Shown: one piece after another, positions 3,885 through 58,939 of the stretch
How the letters are laid out: each line of letters begins with the position of its first letter
Position numbering within the stretch: the first letter of the stretch is position 1
Assembly: GCA_950097015.1 (NCBI GenBank)
Contig: CATNEN010000009.1
Span: forward strand, 1,178,001-1,242,000
From: Macrostomum hystrix
Taxonomy: Eukaryota; Animalia; Platyhelminthes
Direction: 5' to 3'
Length of the DNA: 64,000 nucleotides
Position numbers and translations under genes: made by a program
The notes under the pieces: generated by a model
Database searches by the model: none
What the model was told of the DNA's origin: nothing
The model's input: only the letters and a program-made list of their open reading frames with translations

Positions 3885-5480
3885 TGGTATGACATGGGAT
3901 TTCTGTTTGATGGGATGGGATTTCTGTTGATGGGATGGGATTTCTATTGATGAGATCGGATTTCTGTTGATTGGATTTCTGTAAATGGGATGGGATTTCT
4001 GTTTGATGAGATGGGATTTCTGTTTGATGGGAATGGATTTTTTATTGGTGGGATGGGATTTTTGTTGATGGGATGGGATTTTTGTTGATCGGATGGGATT
4101 TTTGTTGATCGGATGGGATTTCAGTTGATAGGATTTCTGTATATTGGATGGGGCTTCTATTGATGAGATGGGATTTCTGTTTGATGGGATCGGATTTCTG
4201 TTGATTGGATTTCTGTAAATCGGATGGGAATTCTGTTGATGAGATGGATTTTTTGCTAATGGGATGGGAATTCTGTTGATGGAATGGGATTTCTGTTGAT
4301 GGGATCGGATTTCTGTTGATGGGATCGGATTTCTGTTGATTGGATTTCTGTAAATGGGATGGGATTTCTGTTTGATGAGATGGGATTTCTGTTTGATGGG
4401 AATGGATTTTTTATTGGTGGGATGGGATTTTTGTTGATGGGATGGGATTTTTGTTGATCGGATGGGATTTTTGTTGATCGGATGGGATTTCAGTTGATAG
4501 GATTTCTGTATATTGGATGGGGCTTCTATTGATGAGATGGGATTTCTGTTTGATGGGATCGGATTTCTGTTGATTGGATTTCTGTAAATCGGATGGGAAT
4601 TCTGTTGATGAGATGGATTTTTTGCTAATGGGATGGGAATTCTGTTGATGGAATGGGATTTCTGTTGATGGGATCGGATTTCTGTTGATGGGATCGGATT
4701 TCTGTTGATTGGATTTCTGTTGATGGGATGGGATTTCTGTTGATGGGATGGGATTTCTGTTGATGGGATGGGATTTCTGTTGATTGGATTTCTGTAAATG
4801 GGATCGGATTTCTGTTGATGGGATGGGATTTCTGTTGATTGGATTTCTGTAAATGGGATGGGATTTCTGTTGATGAGATGGGATTTCTGTTGATTGGATT
4901 TCTGTAAATCGGATGGGAATTCTGTTGATGAGATGGATTTTTTGCTAATGGGATGGGAATTCTGTTGATGGAATGGGATTTCTGTTGATGGGATCGGATT
5001 TCTGTTGATGGGATCGGATTTCTGTTGATTGGATTTCTGTTGATGGGATGGGATTTCTGTTGATTGGATTTCTGTTGATGGGATGGGATTTCTGTTGATG
5101 GGATGGGATTTCTGTTGATGGGATGGGATTTCTGTTGATGGGATGGGATTTCTGTTGATTGGATTTCTGTAAATGGGATGGGATTTCTGTTGATGGGATG
5201 GGATTTCTGTTGATTGGATTTCTGTTGATGGGATGAGATTTCTGTTGATGGGATGGGATTTCTGTTGATTGGATTTCTGTTGATGGGATGAGATTTCTGT
5301 AAATGGGATGGGATTTCCGTTGATTGGATTTCTGTAAATGGGATGGGATTTCTGTTGATGGGATGGGAGTTCTGTTGATTGGATTTCTGTAAATGGGATG
5401 GGATTTCTGTTGATGGGATGGGAATTCTGTTGATGGGATGGGAATTCTGTTGATGGGATGGGAATTCTGTTGATGGGAAT
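3885..5480. repeat. Complex gggatttctgttgat satellite with a 369-bp higher-order duplication
   Basis: Variant landmarks recur at 4041/4410 and 4141/4510. Confidence 0.95.
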
Positions 5481-6035
5481 TGTATCACACACGCATGTGT
5501 ATTTCACGATGTGTAACAACTTTAATGTTTGTATATGCATCAAGCTCATTTTCTTTAGCTAAAAATTCTTAATGAGTTGAGCTCAAATTAAAGAAAAAAA
5601 GAAGATTTCATGCTTATCACTGCCCTAGAAAGTAGTGAGGCAGGCATGTAGCTACTGTTTAGTATCGATTTCCTCTGCAAATGAATCGAATAAGAAATAA
5701 TATCACTAACGCATGAGAATGCAGGTCTATATGAAAACGAATTCTTGTTACGCATGGCTAATTGAAAGAATTAATTTGTGTACAAGGAATTACCCTTCAA
5801 TTTGGCTTGCTACTGGAATAAAAATTTGGAAATGAGAACAATGGCGAGTGTCATTGGCGGATCATCAGAAAATGGATAAAACTCAACAGCAATTGAAATA
5901 ATCCTTTTGACTCTCATAGATATTTCTAAGGAAAGCTTGGACCAATTAGATAAATAATTGCTAATTAACAAAACAAATTGTTGAAACCAAGTGTCAATTT
6001 CTATTCTCGCCTGCACCTGCTAGACTCTTGAGAGT

Positions 6036-7100
6036 TCATTCCTCTCTGCTCGGGGTGAATCGAACCTCTGCCCAGATCGGAGCATGAGTCGTGTATTCCT
6101 CGACTTGCATCTCATTCATTATCTTCTTGGCGCCGAAGCTGGCCGATCCCTTAGATCGCTGATCAATCAGGGCGAAGTTGTCGATCACCTCAGTTTCGGC
6201 CTCGTTTGTATAACCTTCGATGAAAGCTAGCTTAGATTGGTCGATTGGGATTGTCAAATCCTTGAATTCATCTTCAATTTTCTGTGGCGTCATGTTCCAA
6301 TCGCCACCAATGATGACCAAGTCTGCATCCTTACAGCATTCCTTAATAGCTTTTTTAATGCAGCCATAAGCCGTTTGTTTGCCTTTCGTGCGTGGCAGAT
6401 GCACAGAGAAGTAGGCCAAGAGCATATTGTTCGCTTTCATCTTGAGCTTCGTTAAGAGATAGCGGCCTTCGTCGGAGGCGGGATAATTGGATTGCAATTC
6501 CCAGATATCTTTGTTGTAGGCTGTGACTATTCTATCTGCAGATTTATCATTGAAACAGTGCGAATGCTCAGTCCAACTTTTACCTAAATTTTCACAAAAA
6601 CTTGTTAGCGCAAGTCTGCCACTCCACTCAGAAATCGTAACTATGCTGGGTTGTACTTTATCGGGCACAAGTTCTGCCGCCTCCATCGCCTCCCGCATTG
6701 CAGTCTCGGAATGCTCTGTAGCACTTTTTGCTGCCTCCTGTGCCGCCTGCCATGACACTGAAGCCGCCTCCTTTGCTGCCTTGTTTGCCTTTTTCCATTT
6801 TGCTTTAACTGTTGCATCTTGTGCCGCAGTGGTCTCATTTGCTGCCTTCTTAGCAGCCTCAATAGCCTTCGTAGCAGCCTCGATAGCCGCCTTCGCCTGC
6901 CTGGACGCATGCTGTGAGACGTGCAAAGCCGTCAGGGCTTCCGCCTTCTTCGGCAAGGCTGCCTGCGCTGCCGCCAGCTTTGCAATTTCGTGCAGTCCAC
7001 CGGCCAGTTTGTCGCCTTTCAGTTGCTCTTTTCGTTTTGAAGCATCCGCGTTGATGGCCAGGGCCATGAACTTGACGTCTTTGCGTTCGCCGTCCGCCAT
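6036..7100 (-). CDS. Stand-alone EEP-superfamily (DNase I/APE/CCR4-like) nuclease/phosphatase with an Ala/Lys-rich helical insertion
   Basis: 354-aa intronless ORF with ordered EEP motifs: AIN, PSIVTISE, GRY, SVHLP, IIGGDWN, IDNF, TTHAPI. No RT ORF adjacent. Confidence 0.75.
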   Translation of the reverse strand: MADGERKDVKFMALAINADASKRKEQLKGDKLAGGLHEIAKLAAAQAALPKKAEALTALHVSQHASRQAKAAIEAATKAIEAAKKAANETTAAQDATVKAKWKKANKAAKEAASVSWQAAQEAAKSATEHSETAMREAMEAAELVPDKVQPSIVTISEWSGRLALTSFCENLGKSWTEHSHCFNDKSADRIVTAYNKDIWELQSNYPASDEGRYLLTKLKMKANNMLLAYFSVHLPRTKGKQTAYGCIKKAIKECCKDADLVIIGGDWNMTPQKIEDEFKDLTIPIDQSKLAFIEGYTNEAETEVIDNFALIDQRSKGSASFGAKKIMNEMQVEEYTTHAPIWAEVRFTPSREE

Positions 7101-7108
7101 CCTTCAAC

Positions 7109-7140
7109 CTTGATAATGATAAAATGCGGGTCAGTCAGGC
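7109..7140 (-). promoter_or_regulatory. 3' splice (or trans-splice) acceptor 8 nt upstream of the EEP ATG
   Basis: CTGAC branch-like motifs, T-rich tract, then CAAG|GTTGAAGG-ATG. Confidence 0.55.
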
Positions 7141-7145
7141 CGTCC

Positions 7146-7372
7146 CTGACCCCAGTCCCTGATTCCAGTCCCTGATCCCAGTCCCTGATCCCAGTCCCTG
7201 ATCCCAGTCCCTGATCCCAGTCCCTGATCCCAGTCCCTGATCCCAGTCCCTGATCCCGATCCCAGTCCCTGATCCCAGTCCCTGATCCCAGTCCCTGATC
7301 CCAGTCCCAGATCCCAGTCCCTGATCCCAGTCCCTGATCCCAGTCCCTGATCCCAGTCCCTGATCCCAATCC
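7146..7372. repeat. 13-bp minisatellite gatcccagtccct (array 1, intronic)
   Basis: Directly visible. Confidence 0.95.
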
Positions 7373-7377
7373 CTCAC

Positions 7378-7721
7378 CAAAGGCAGCCAGTCAGCAGGGC
7401 AGTCCACTCAGATTAGCTGTCAGCAATTGTCGACTCGGCACAGCAACTGGGAGTGTCCAGGCGCAGCTCAGAAGTGGCCAAGCGAATTCTGCCTGTTCGC
7501 TCATATACTCGCATACCCGCAGCATTTCGCCGCGCGGGACAGCTGAATCTTCACTCACGGCTGCAGCGCAGGAGAGGGGACGGTCGGAGACGGTCAGTCC
7601 CTCTGATCCAAGCCAGCGGGCAGCAGCTCGGCACAATAGCTGGGGCACCCAGTAGAGTAGTATTGAAGACTGGACTTCCTCGTCTTCCCCACTGCTTTCC
7701 AACTCCTTTAGTATTTTGTAG
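7378..7721 (-). CDS. Putative terminal coding exon of an unidentified upstream gene (stop at 7391-7393)
   Basis: Acceptor ttgtgttttatttctag|C; about 110 protein-like codons (YKILKELESSGEDEEVQSSILLYWVPQLL...); donor TTG|GTGAGG 13 nt after the stop. Confidence 0.45.
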
Positions 7722-8212: not shown

Positions 8213-8895
8213 CAATCCCAGTCCCTGATCCCAGTCCCTGATCCCAGTCCCTGATCCCAGTCCCTGATCCCAGTCCCTGATCCCAGTCCCTGATCCCAGT
8301 CCCTGATCCCAGTCCCTGATCCCAGTCCCTGATCCCAGTCCCTGATCCCAGTCCCTGATCCCAGTCCCTGATCCCAGTCCCTGATCCCAGTCCCTGATCC
8401 CAGTCCCTGATCCCAGTCCCTGATCCCAGTCCCTGATCCCAGTCCCTGATCCCAGTCCCTGATCCCAGTCCCTGATCCCAGTCCCTGATCCCAGTCCCTG
8501 ATCCCAGTCCCTGATCCCAGTCCCTGATCCCAGTCCCTGATCCCAGTCCCTGATCCCAGTCCCTGATCCCAGTCCCTGATCCCAGTCCCTGATCCCAGTC
8601 CCTGATCCCAGTCCCTGATCCCAGTCCCTGATCCCAGTCCCTGATCCCAGTCCCTGATCCCAGTCCCTGATCCCACTCTTTGATCTCAGTCCGAGATCCC
8701 AGTCCCTGATCCCAGTCCGTAGTCCCATTCTCTGATCCCAGTCCCCAATCCCAGTCCCTGATCCCAGTCCCTGATCCCAGTCCCTGATCCCAGTCCCTGA
8801 TCCCAGTCCCTGATCCCAGTCCCTGATCCCAGTCCCTGATCCCAGTCCCTGATCCCAGTCCCTGATCCCAGTCCCTGATCCCAGCCCCTGATCCC
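8213..8895. repeat. 13-bp minisatellite gatcccagtccct (array 2)
   Basis: Same unit and orientation as 7146-7372. Confidence 0.97.
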
Positions 8896-9377: not shown

Positions 9378-11275
9378 TGTAGGATTCATGTAGGATTCTT
9401 GTAGGATTCTTGTAGGATTATTGCAGGATTCTTGTAGGATTCTTGTAGGATTATTGCAGGATTCTTGTAGGATTCTTGTAGGATTCTTGTAGGATACTAG
9501 CAGGATTCTTGTAGGATTATTGCAGGATTCTTGTAGGATTCTTGTAGGATTATTGCAGGATTCCTGTAGGATTCTTGTAGGATTCTTGTAGGATACTAGT
9601 AGGATTCTTGTAGGATTATTGCAGGATTCTTGTAGGATTCTTGTAGGATTATTGCAGGATTCTTGTAGGATTATTGCAGGATTCTTGTAGGATTATTGCA
9701 GGATTCTTGTAGGATTATTGCAGGATTCTTGTAGGATTCTTGTAGGATTATTGCAGGATTCTTGTAGGATTCTTGTAGGATTCTTGTAGGATACTAGTAG
9801 GATTCTTGTAGGATTATTGCAGGATTCTTGTAGGATTCTTGTAGGATTCTTGTAGGATTATTGTAGGATTCTTGTAGGATTCTTGTAGGATTCTTGTAGG
9901 ATTCTTGTAGGATTCTTGTAGGATTCTTGTAGGATTATTGCAGGATTCTTGTAGGATTCTTGTAGGATTTTTGCAGGATTCTTGTAGGATTCTTGTAGGA
10001 TTATTGTAGGATACTAGCAGGATTCTTGTAGGATTATTGCAGGATTCTTGTACGATTCTTGTAGGATTCTTGTAGGATTCTTGTAGGATTCTTGTAGGAT
10101 ACTAGCAGGATTCTTGTAGGATTATTGCAGGATTATTGTAGGATTCTTGTAGGATTCTTGTAGGATTCTTGTAGGATTCTTGTAGGATTCTTGTAGGATT
10201 CTTGTAGGATTCTTGTAGGATACTAGTAGGATTCTTGTAGGATACTAGTAGGATTCTTGTAGGATTATTGCAGGATTCTTGTAGGATTCTTGTAGGATTA
10301 TTGTAGGATTATTGTAGGATTCTTGTAGGATTCTTGTAGGATTCTTGTAGGATTATTGTAGGATTCTTGTAGGATTCTTGTAGGATTCTTGTAGGATTAT
10401 TGCAGGATTCTTGTAGGATTCTTGTAGGATTATTGCAGGATTCTTGTAGGATTCTTGTAGGATTATTGCAGGATTCTTGTAGGATTCTTGTAGGATTATT
10501 GTAGGATACTAGCAGGATTCTTGTAGGATTATTGCAGGATTCTTGTAGGATTCTTGTAGGATTCTTGTAGGATTCTTGTAGGATTCTTGTAGGATACTAG
10601 TAGGATTCTTGTAGGATTCTTGTAGGATTATTGTAGGATACTAGCAGGATTCTTGTAGGATTATTGCAGGATTCTTGTAGGATTCTTGTAGGATTCTTGT
10701 AGGATTCTTGTAGGATTATTGTAGGATACTAGCAGGATTCTTGTAGGATTATTGCAGGATTCTTGTAGGATTCTTGTAGGATTCTTGTAGGATTCTTGTA
10801 GGATTCTTGTAGGATACTAGTAGGATTCTTGTAGGATACTAGCAGGATTCTTGTAGGATTATTGCAGGATTCTTGTAGGATTCTTGTAGGATTCTTGTAG
10901 GATTCTTGTAGGATTCTTGTAGGATTCTTGTAGGATTCTTGTAGGATTCTTGTAGGATACTAGTAGGATTCTTGTAGGATACTAGTAGGATTCTTGTAGG
11001 ATTATTGCAGGATTCTTGTAGGATTCTTGTAGGATTATTGTAGGATTATTGTAGGATTCTTGTAGGATTCTTGTAGGATTCTTGTAGGATTATTGTAGGA
11101 TTCTTGTAGGATTCTTGTAGGATTCTTGTAGGATTATTGCAGGATTCTTGTAGGATTCTTGTAGGATTATTGCAGGATTCTTGTAGGATTCTTGTAGGAT
11201 TATTGCAGGATTCTTGTAGGATTCTTGTAGGATTATTGTAGGATACTAGCAGGATTCTTGAAGGATTATTGTAGG
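9378..11275. repeat. 11-bp satellite ttgtaggattc with variants
   Basis: About 1.9 kb array. Confidence 0.97.
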
Positions 11276-11901: not shown

Positions 11902-12637
11902 ACGATTCATATTCAAAGATGCGGCCACAAGCCTTTACACATATTGAGAGCCCGTACTAGTAAGCTGAAACGAGACAAAGATTGGATGATGTAGGCAACA
12001 AACAATGAGAGGCTTGCCAGCCAGCCATTGTATGTGGCTTATTTGTCTGTTACTATGGACAGTGAACAGCCCTTTCTGCGGCAGTTTTCATTGTGTTAGG
12101 AGAAGCAGCCCATTGTCCGGACCGCTATAGGCTGACTGGCTGTCAGATGTCTTATAAAATTATTTGAAAACCTGGAACAAAGAAGTAAAAAAGAGACACG
12201 CATGATGTGGAAAATTAGTTTATAAAATGAAAACGCCACCAAAAATACAAAGCCTCATTTACAGAGAAGAAGCCAGAATAACAATGGGCCCTCCTGGAGG
12301 CCCGGCTGGAGATGAAAAGCGGTGGCAGAGCGAAGGCAACAGGCGGGGAGGTCAGCAGAAGTAAAGAACTGTGCCAATGCTTGTGTTGCTAATAGAGCCA
12401 CCCTACTGGGGAACTTTATTCATCTGTTCAGAAACATTCGCACACCTTTTACATTTTGTTCATCTTTCATTTTGTCTTACTAATCCCGATTAAATATCTG
12501 GAACGGACAATTGAAGTTGTTCATTGCGAGGTATTTCCTGAACAATTGACTTTTGGTCGTCACTCAATAAAACACAACGCATGAAAAATATATTTAGAAA
12601 ACCAAGAGGATCATGAGCCGTTTCGTCGTGAGCAGTA

Positions 12638-14545
12638 GGGATTCCCATTCTTCCCCTACCCCAAGGATTCCCATTCTTCCTTCACCTTCCCCAGGGATTT
12701 TCATTCTTCCCCTACCCCAAGGATTCCCATTCTTCCCCCTACCCAAAGGATTCCCATTCTTCTGCTACACCAGGGATTCCCATTCTTCTACTACACCAGG
12801 GATTCCCATTCTTCTCCTTACACCAGGGATTCCCATTCTTCTACTACACCAGGGATTCCCATTCTTCTACTACACCAGGGATTCCCATTCTTCTACTTAC
12901 ACCAGGGATTCCCATTCTTCTACTTACACCAGGGATTCCCATTCTTCTACTACACCAGGGATTCCCATTCTTCTACTACACCAGGGATTCCCATTCTTCT
13001 ACTTACACCAGGGATTCCCATTCTTCTACTACACCAGGGATTCCCATTCTTCTACTTACACCAGGGATTCCCATTCTTCTGCTACACCAGGGATTCCCAT
13101 TCTTCTACTTACACCAGGGATTCCCATTCTTCTACTACACCAGGGATTCCCATTCTTCTACTACACCAGGGATTCCCATTCTTCTACTACACCAGGGATT
13201 CCCATTCTTCTACTACACCAGGGATTCCCATTCTTCTACTACACCAGGGATTCCCATTCTTCTACTACACCAGGGATTCCCATTCTTCTACTACACCAGG
13301 GATTCCCATTCTTCTACTACACCAGGGATTCCCATTCTTCTTCTACACCAGGGATTCTCATTCTTCCCCTACCCCAAGGATTCCCATTCTTCTTCTACAC
13401 CAGGGATTCTCATTCTTCCCCTACCCCAAAGATTCCCATTCTTCTTCTACACCAGGGATTCCCATTCTTCCCCTACCCCAAGAATTCCCATTCTTCCCCT
13501 ACCCCAGGGATTCCCATTCTTCTACTACACCAGGGATTCCCATTCTTCCCCTACCCCAGGGATTCCCATTCTTCTACTACACCAGGGATTCCCATTCTTC
13601 CCCTACCCAAGGATTCCCATTCTTCTACTACACCAAGGATTCCCATTCTTCTACTACCCCAGGGATTCCCATTCTTCTACTACACCAGGGATTCCCATTC
13701 TTCCCCTACCCCAAGGATTCCCATTCTTCCCCTACACCAAGGATTCCCAATCTTCCTCTACCCCAGGGATTCCCATTCTTCTACTACACCAGGGATTCCC
13801 ATTCTTCCCCTTACATCAGGAATTACCATTCTTCTCCTTCCGCGGGGATTTCCGATTTTCTCCCTACCCCAAGGATTCCCATTTTTCCCCTACACCAGGG
13901 ATTAAAACTCTTCCCCTTCCCTATGGATTTCCATTATTCTCCTTCCCCAGTGATTCCCATTCTTCGCCCTACCCCAGAGATTCCCATTCTTCTGCTACAC
14001 CAGGGATTCCCATTCTTCCCCTACCCCAAGGATTCCCATACTTCCTTCTCCTTCCCCAGGGATTTCCATTCTTCTCCTTCCGCAGGGATTCCCATTTTTC
14101 TCCCTTCTTCAGGGATTCCCATTCTTCCCCTACCCCAAGGATTCCCATTTTTCTTCTACACCAGGGATTCCCATTCCTCTCCCTACACCAGGGATTCTCA
14201 TTCTTCCCCTACCCCAAGGATTCCCATTCTTCTGCTACACCAGGGATTCCCATTCTTCCCCTACCCCAAGGATTCCCATACTTCCTTCTCCTTCCCCAGG
14301 GATTTCCATTCTTCTCCTTCCGCAGGGATTCCCATTTTTCTCCCTTCTTTAGGGATTCTCATTCTTCCCCTACCCCAAGGATTCCCATTCTTCTCCTTCC
14401 TCAGGGATTTCTGTTCGGTTGTTCTCCCTACCCCAAGGATTCCCATTCTTCTACTACACCAGGGATTCTCATTCTTCTACTACACCAGGGATTCTCATTC
14501 TTCTACTACACCAGGGATTCCTATTATTCCCCTACGCCTGGGATT
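12638..14545. repeat. Variable 25-28-bp minisatellite accagggattcccattcttctactac
   Basis: Homogeneous centre, diverged flanks. Confidence 0.95.
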
Positions 14546-14604
14546 TCCCCAGCAGGTGAGGCAGGGCGGTCGAAATCCATCGAGGCAGCAGCGACGACAG
14601 GGCT

Positions 14605-14820
14605 GTTAGATATTGAAGTGTTAGATATTTAAGTGTTAGATTTCTAAATTTTAGATATTGAAATGTTAGATATTGAAATGTTAGATATAGAAGCTGCAGT
14701 TAGATGTTTTAGCTGTTATATAGTTAAGCTGTTATATATTTAGGCTGTTACATATTAAAGCCGTTAGATATTAAAGTTTTAGATACTGAAATTTTAGATA
14801 TTAAAGCTGTTAGATATTGG
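14605..14820. repeat. Degenerate gttagatattgaa repeat
   Basis: Directly visible. Confidence 0.7.

Positions 14821-16786: not shown

Positions 16787-58939
<42,153 letters not shown>

Follow-up and report, generated by a model that had tools for sequence, protein, structure and literature searches.

The endonuclease/exonuclease/phosphatase (EEP) superfamily (PF03372), which includes ExoIII/APE1, DNase I, CCR4/nocturnin, TDP2, the neutral sphingomyelinases and the inositol 5-phosphatases, is characterized by a four-layer alpha/beta sandwich and a fixed order of catalytic motifs, both of which are shared by the protein described here. In the EEP topology, the active-site face is where strands beta-1 and beta-2 terminate, and helix alpha-1 connects them via the opposite face. 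An Asp-His pair is common in EEPs, though not strictly defining, and APE1 D308 mutants keep activity. At the position of APE1 Y171, endonucleases of long interspersed nuclear elements (LINEs) carry Tyr, while TDP2 carries His and keeps the Asp-His pair. Human nSMase2, likewise an EEP, has N-terminal membrane segments, and its catalytic domain contains a large lineage-specific insertion located elsewhere than the insert reported below. The gene analyzed here lies on the minus strand of a 64,000-nucleotide stretch of the flatworm Macrostomum hystrix (assembly GCA_950097015.1, contig CATNEN010000009.1, positions 1,178,001 to 1,242,000; hereafter the window, to which all coordinates refer), with a coding sequence (CDS) at positions 6036-7100. 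Taken as a whole, the evidence probably describes an expressed two-exon Macrostomum gene for a stand-alone EEP enzyme, which gained an arm of about 105 residues after its latest duplication.

Gene structure and predicted fold

The open reading frame (ORF), taken from ATG to stop from the ORF list and comprising 354 codons plus stop, is a real, transcribed gene with two exons, one of them coding. Contigs from public runs were compared with window positions 5480-7141; the window organism is designated A, and its two relatives C and D. Contig X1 (1,556 nt) reproduces positions 5629-7109 with 0 differences and 0 gaps and then continues for 75 nt from position 7379 onward, its end beyond 7109 mapping exactly to 7379-7408 and further. 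It thereby skips a 269-nt intron of the 5' untranslated region (UTR) (7109-7377, minus strand, GTGAGG...TCAAG) with canonical GT..AG boundaries, and the identical splice junction occurs in contigs X9 and X10 of organism C; since all three contigs skip this intron, they are RNA-derived. Exon 1 (7378-7452, minus strand) contributes at least 75 nt of 5'UTR, and exon 2 (5629-7108, minus strand) begins with 8 nt of 5'UTR, continues through the complete CDS and ends in a 3'UTR of at least 407 nt (5629-6035, minus strand, the minimum extent covered by X1). The mature transcript has an in-frame TGA 6 nt 5' of the ATG, so that the CDS is fully defined and contained within one exon. The original prediction, made from the window letters and their ORFs, had described an ORF without introns; this holds for the CDS but not for the gene, and the spliced 5'UTR intron likewise weakens the suggestion that the gene was retroposed. 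The ORF is also covered in organisms C (~96% identical) and D (~88-93% identical) and stays open in all three organisms, and the small indels among those listed for C and D total zero or multiples of three.

The AlphaFold model built on a 48-sequence alignment reached a mean predicted local distance difference test (pLDDT) score of 85.7, with 90-97 over most of the core, and a predicted template modelling score of 0.79, superseding an earlier run on 5 sequences of moderate quality (pLDDT 66). Superposition with VIA-align on 50 EEP entries gave Z scores of 19-23 and root-mean-square deviations of 2.6-3.6 Å over 200-231 residues. The best match was the Bacteroides EEP 3mpr (Z 23.0, 2.7 Å, 223 residues, nearly the whole non-insert part), followed by 3g6s (Z 22.8), nSMase2 (22.5), TDP2 (22.2), nocturnin (21.7) and the mannosyl-6-phosphatase Bt3783 (21.5); ANGEL2, PDE12 and CNOT6L scored ~20, and L1 endonuclease ~19. 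In line with these values, all 50 of the 50 matches listed by Foldseek for the 5-sequence model were EEPs, the top one being TDP2 (6ca4, E = 3e-9), and EEP clusters occupied all 10 of the 10 rows listed by the Atlas structure search. At the level of predicted structure the EEP fold assignment is thus secure, which is the outcome of the structure-prediction check that the original proposal had called for. Because the top EEP branches are effectively tied structurally, no sub-family can be assigned. The protein, a member of a divergent subfamily, is not a 1:1 ortholog of any characterized EEP, an outcome that agrees with the original proposal.

Catalytic residues and subfamily

Strand beta-1 with motif I (FMALAINADASKR; N17 and D19) is encoded at positions 7032-7076 (minus strand; residues 9-17 form the strand in the model), and the remaining catalytic core, residues 150-354, at positions 6039-6653 (minus strand). 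The predicted catalytic residues occur in the contexts ALAINADA (N17/D19), SIVTISE (E158), SVHLP (H234), GGDWN (D267/N269), IDNF (D307, followed by N308) and TTHAP (H339), which reproduces the canonical EEP order of Asn/Asp on beta-1, Glu on beta-2, His, Asp-x-Asn, Asp and His. The motif order and residues first proposed are therefore in place, with the exception that the His of SVHLP is residue 234 rather than 235. Residues E158, H234, G266, D267 and N269 are invariant across the 48-sequence alignment; N17, D19, D307, N308 and H339 recur in 46 or more of the 48 sequences, and P236 and P341 in at least 90%. The motif-I Asn and Asp were found in 47 of 47 aligned relatives. The predicted His at the APE1 Y171 position is accordingly borne out by the invariant H234, the equivalence being one of motif order rather than of residue-level superposition. 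Together, the model, the motifs and the stand-alone relatives described below bear out the early view that the protein stands alone, has the EEP fold and possesses a catalytic set that is essentially complete.

The residue that departs from the classical set is the Asp before the catalytic His, which is absent from the window protein (T338-H339 where SDH is usual). The TTH motif had been correctly noticed, but as an oddity caused by loss of a metal-binding Asp. Among 47 relatives this position holds Ser in 23 and Thr in 14 (37 of 47 together), and Asp in a single sequence. Judged from the alignment, replacement of Asp-His by Ser/Thr-His is a stable trait of the whole subfamily, with no recent loss in the window gene.

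An exhaustive profile search recovered 98 relatives at E ≤ 1e-3, stand-alone proteins of 200-400 amino acids; the signature of the family is [AI]N-x-D-x-[ST]NR, T-x-SE, SVHLPHK, GD[FW]N, IDN and [ST]-H-x-P. Searches of Pfam, NCBIfam and PDB with the single ORF sequence returned nothing significant: the best Pfam match was PF14529 (12.3 bits against a gathering cut-off of 27.4), and PF03372 did not match. Within the family, 12 of 35 members matched PF03372 at E < 0.01 (best E 1.8e-5) and two matched PF14529; in all ten relatives tabulated the PF03372 score stayed below the gathering cut-off (best 22.1 versus 24.5 bits). The family profile run against PDB likewise retrieved only EEPs, all marginally (ExoIII at E = 0.007, with nocturnin, nSMase2, DNase I and CdtB weaker). 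The best homologs outside the window organism are two Macrostomum lignano proteins (P0001 and P0002), and in a word search M. lignano was the only animal for which a named homolog came up. The remaining members with a taxon name are all protists, namely Mantoniella beaufortii, Lapot gusevi, Euglena gracilis and Gloeochaete wittrockiana, while for the majority of the 98 relatives no taxon is given. On the long metagenome contigs that encode members, prokaryote-style gene calls are very sparse, as expected of eukaryotic DNA. Scans with patterns from the five Macrostomum sequences gave 282 pattern matches in bacterial and archaeal species genomes and 36 in viral contigs, with none confirmed in either set, which, limited as both scans are by their patterns, is weak evidence of absence. 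A haptophyte DUF8234 cluster was listed by the Atlas feature search, and none of the family proteins compared with Pfam hit a model of this kind; a literature search by M. lignano gene identifiers found no paper on these homologs. On this sequence evidence, the protein is placed in a eukaryotic EEP subfamily that has no name, is highly divergent and lies below Pfam thresholds.

Several members bear segments outside the common core. Seven distinct protist-type relatives (eight listed sequences: P0008, P0009/P0101, P0011, P0024, P0033, P0065 and P0075) start with a Cys/His-rich extension, MVC-x-CCG...CSC...H-x-C, which is unrecognized by Pfam and may serve either to bind zinc, as a small module of the zinc-knuckle kind, or as a site of acylation. 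Lineage-specific C-terminal additions were observed in a second M. hystrix copy (L003, positions 2100-2301 of its locus, a Lys/Glu/Ser-rich low-complexity tail) and in M. lignano P0002 (residues 255-296, an (SEGAT)n repeat). Gain of low-complexity segments thus seems to come easily to this family.

The same data bear on whether the protein could derive from the endonuclease of a LINE-type retrotransposon, either as a remnant or by domestication. The name of its best Pfam match, PF14529 'Endonuclease-reverse transcriptase', would point that way, non-significant as the match is, as would the presence of L1 endonuclease among the structural matches. On the other hand, TDP2, nSMase2 and the Bacteroides EEPs outscore L1 endonuclease structurally, PF03372 is matched by more family members than PF14529, the APE1 Y171 position holds His and not Tyr, and the relatives are stand-alone proteins, some of them in protists. 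The copy-number check found three copies in the 220-Mb, 42-contig genome, one of them a pseudogene, and neither the neighbouring ORFs nor the ~10 kb around the gene contained reverse transcriptase (RT) or transposable element (TE) domains. This origin is largely refuted and we regard it as highly improbable; the earlier statement that the gene has no RT partner and is not an ordinary LINE fragment agrees with these results, and its suggestion of a TE-domesticated nuclease does not.

The helical insert and the proposed mechanism

The three M. hystrix copies match the window protein at 46-100% identity. Besides the window gene they comprise L003, an intact ORF of 321 amino acids (46% identity), and L002 (50% identity), a pseudogene with two frameshifts and a TAG whose N-terminus is replaced by a 13-nt satellite. 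The CDS is intronless in all Macrostomum copies. In a quick maximum-likelihood tree with an arbitrary root, the five Macrostomum sequences formed one clade (Shimodaira-Hasegawa-like approximate likelihood ratio test, SH-aLRT, 98), within which the window copy and L002 were sisters (SH-aLRT 98).

The window protein differs from all these copies by a lineage-specific insert at residues 43-149 (positions 6654-6974, minus strand), which contains 37 Ala, 14 Lys and 11 Glu and is absent from all aligned relatives, that is, from L003, L002, M. lignano P0001 and P0002 and the 43 more distant sequences. The motif-I Asn and the catalytic Glu of the window protein lie 141 residues apart, whereas the median spacing for 46 relatives is 38 (range 32-60). 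In all the relatives without the insert just listed, a short link joins alpha-1 to the Glu strand (e.g., EIAK-QNPLL-SIITVWE in L002). Since the window copy is sister to the insert-less L002, the insert arose after the latest duplication. It is retained in the mature transcript, as shown by the exact RNA contig X1, and is also found in organisms C and D, where the length differences listed are in frame (138 nt; 46 nt plus 1 nt added). Outside organisms A, C and D it occurs in none of the relatives aligned, and this segment of about 105 residues is thus a new architecture; a literature search on EEP insertions and coiled coils found no paper on a comparable insert. A second local divergence hot-spot, alongside the insert, was observed in the loop past the Glu strand (positions 6588-6618, residues ~161-171; GRLALTSFCENLG), where compensating 1-nt indels and substitutions cluster in organisms C and D.

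Some features of the insert relate to its source. It includes a 21-nt direct repeat in 2.1 copies (positions 6844-6888, minus strand, identified by Tandem Repeats Finder, TRF), translated as AIEAATK/AIEAAKK, and uses the Ala codon GCC in 2 of 37 cases, compared with 10 of 23 in the rest of the ORF (Fisher p = 6e-4). Protein and DNA searches of the genome for a donor returned the locus itself as the sole match. Two candidate sources were rejected. A retained or cryptic intron disagrees with the exact RNA contig, which carries the insert, and with L003 and L002, which have no intron at that position; derivation of the second helix as a diverged duplicate of the first, forward or reversed, scored no better than shuffled sequences (80-87 of 500 shuffles reached the score).

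In the AlphaFold model, alpha-1 is extended into an antiparallel helical hairpin (helices at residues 29-90 and 96-143) that precedes beta-2. Helicity of the insert is plausible, and the packing of the hairpin is a prediction of the model. The position, large size and predicted helical character of the insert are those first described, while its length is ~100-107 residues rather than ~125. The periodicity of Ala plus hydrophobic residues and that of charged residues peak at 3.6-3.7 residues, the apolar face is mostly Ala, and large hydrophobic residues account for 15 of 107 positions, with one heptad pair (AIEAATK/AIEAAKK). This pattern fits an amphipathic helix better than a classical heptad coiled coil, and the coiled coil initially suggested finds no clear support. 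Nor does its role as an oligomerisation arm find support: a homodimer prediction for residues 25-152 scored 0.00 and, with its controls not run, gave no verdict, and is weighed neither for nor against self-association.

As all canonical catalytic residues are kept except the Asp before His, the protein is, by analogy with characterized EEPs, most likely an active Mg2+-dependent phosphoesterase. On the model of APE1, ExoIII and TDP2, Glu158, Asn17 and Asp19 would hold the metal (Mg2+), the His339-Asp307 pair would activate the attacking water, and Asn269, His234 and Asp267 would position the scissile phosphate; more speculatively, the invariant Asn308 may make up for the missing Asp. In its compactness the core is similar to TDP2 and to bacterial EEPs of minimal size, and a nucleic-acid end or phosphodiester is slightly favoured, at low confidence, over a lipid or sugar phosphate as substrate. 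After the latest duplication, the window copy would have gained its ~105 Ala/Lys/Glu-rich residues exactly at the alpha-1/beta-2 junction, most likely born locally as new, slippage-prone low-complexity coding sequence whose in-frame length is still changing between close relatives. The insert would thereby turn the short alpha-1 into a long amphipathic hairpin. Because alpha-1 runs by the face opposite to the active site, an extension between alpha-1 and beta-2 should project away from the catalytic pocket, and an arm pointing away would provide a docking, localisation or spacing function and leave catalysis unblocked.

A number of points weigh against this interpretation. The window protein is unrecognized by Pfam (best E = 0.16), and the catalytic reading of the subfamily rests on predicted fold and on residues shared with characterized enzymes; the missing Asp before His may result in a chemistry that differs from, or is weaker than, that of classical EEPs. 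The hairpin geometry comes from AlphaFold alone, with no homologs covering the insert, and ESMFold2 gave pLDDT < 50 for the isolated hairpin; the direction in which the arm should point derives from general EEP topology and not from coordinates. Finally, the substitutions between organisms A and C, among those listed, comprise 17 nonsynonymous and 7 synonymous changes, a ratio which suggests relaxed or diversifying selection.

An alternative explanation is a catalytically dead or re-purposed EEP scaffold, encoded by a gene under drift, with the insert being a low-complexity expansion that is neutral and contributes no separate function. Such a scaffold would account for the loss of the metal-site Asp and for the excess of nonsynonymous changes, and would be compatible with the low-complexity, length-variable nature of the insert and with the decay of the sister copy L002. 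However, eight further catalytic residues are preserved in the window protein and throughout the family despite its very deep divergence, absence of the Asp characterizes the family stably and is not a recent loss, and the ORF remains open in three organisms, with the listed indels preserving the frame in sum and the gene being transcribed and spliced. We therefore consider a dead scaffold a rather unlikely explanation, and an active enzyme with a recently gained arm is the interpretation retained below.

Origin and surroundings

Horizontal transfer from a microbial eukaryote into the Macrostomum lineage, followed by duplication and diversification, would leave the enzyme and its new arm as described and would alter only the history of the gene. 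The named relatives outside Macrostomum are all protists and their distribution is patchy, M. lignano is the only other animal named, the CDS is intronless in every Macrostomum copy, and in the quick tree the Macrostomum clade is nested among environmental and protist sequences. By contrast, the gene has a spliced 5'UTR intron and, with orthologs in M. lignano, is at least as old as the genus; the nearest outgroups (P0003, from run SRR24908316, and P0004) could themselves be animals, most of the 98 relatives have no taxon, the root of the tree is arbitrary, and an ancient origin with many losses fits equally well. Base composition does not help the case for transfer either. The ORF has a GC content of 49.9% (53.8% at third codon positions, GC3), ordinary for a window of 50.4%; within it, the insert reaches 57% and the remainder 46.8%. 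The ORF had initially been described as low in GC, and a foreign origin argued from this, on the basis of two 60-nt lines counted by hand (32% and 38%); these are the two lowest of its eighteen lines (0.37 and 0.38), and the ORF falls below only the neighbouring Fat-like cadherin ORFs (60-65%). Neither the description nor the argument holds. Transfer from a microbial eukaryote is therefore possible but, in our judgement, on the unlikely side; of the horizontal acquisition proposed at the outset, a microbial eukaryote survives as a possible donor, suggested by the patchy distribution, and no bacterial or viral link was found.

The gene is flanked by satellites, and the nearest recognizable genes are cadherin exons. 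The cadherin ORFs (positions 17582-22491, plus strand; GC 60-65%, GC3 65-68%), which are the 'Fat exons' of the original prediction, encode several cadherin domains, among them a FAT4-like N-terminal cadherin domain. A 13-nt satellite of the GGGACTGGGATCA type was identified by TRF both inside the 5'UTR intron (7142-7374) and ~1 kb upstream of the gene (8215-8895). On another contig the same satellite (positions 1250-1345 of the L002 locus) runs straight into codon ~13 of the L002 pseudogene; either the satellite moved along with the segment that was duplicated, or it seeds again and again at such loci. Just downstream of the 3'UTR lies a 1.6-kb tandem array (3894-5478) with a period of 20 or 55 nt, ~83 copies of ATGGGATTTCTGTTGATGGG and strong GC skew, which generates long spurious ORFs (593 and 287 amino acids). 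Farther away, an 11-nt tandem array occupies positions 9378-9495, and two long plus-strand ORFs (430 and 228 amino acids; 12613-14609) with strongly negative GC skew and no Pfam match may be repeat-derived, as are the other spurious ORFs.

Comparison with known systems

With this analysis, a flatworm ORF that had been an orphan becomes an enzyme open to testing, with a clear predicted fold, named predicted catalytic residues and, in L003, a natural insert-less version. It also delineates an EEP subfamily missed by current Pfam models, which spans green algae, glaucophytes, euglenids, rhizarians and Macrostomum, and in which Ser/Thr-His replaces a near-universal Asp-His, a substitution relevant to how EEP active sites diversify. 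The insert offers a well-dated, transcribed case of a large segment, predicted to be structured, that emerged inside a conserved catalytic fold: it post-dates the last duplication, at least three close relatives have it, and its length still shifts in frame. Current understanding is not overturned, and the finding is a lead rather than a discovery. A bolder proposal, that the protist and Macrostomum proteins form a new functional EEP class whose metal/phosphate site is modified (Ser/Thr-His, together with an invariant Asp-Asn) and whose substrate is unlike that of characterized EEPs, that the gene came from a microbial eukaryote, and that the hairpin, born from new sequence in one copy, serves as a targeting or assembly arm (e.g., for membranes, lipid droplets or a partner protein), is in our view a long shot.

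Compared with the EEP superfamily at large, the subfamily scores below the Pfam gathering threshold and is distinguished by Ser/Thr in place of the Asp before His and by the invariant Asn of its IDN motif, while the C-terminal motif HAPIWAE resembles SDHAPVWATF of ExoIII. The best structural matches, the Bacteroides EEPs of unknown function 3mpr and 3g6s and the mannosyl-6-phosphatase Bt3783 (4c1r), consist, like the window protein, of a minimal core without large substrate-binding elaborations; they differ in being bacterial, in sharing 13-15% identity with no significant sequence relationship (E = 0.093 for 3mpr) and in having no insert. The catalytic domain of TDP2 presents a similarly compact core of ~250 residues, although identity amounts to 13-14%, no TDP2 chain was retrieved at E ≤ 1 by the family-profile search of PDB, and the window protein, whose core starts at residue 9, has no room for the UBA domain of TDP2. 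Human nSMase2 (8j2f) was superposed over 227 residues and gave a weak profile match in the GDFN region (E = 0.034). Among all these proteins, the window copy alone carries a predicted hairpin of ~105 residues between alpha-1 and beta-2. What was already known is thus the EEP fold, and what is new is a sub-threshold EEP subfamily with Ser/Thr-His, one member of which has recently acquired a transcribed, predicted helical insert.

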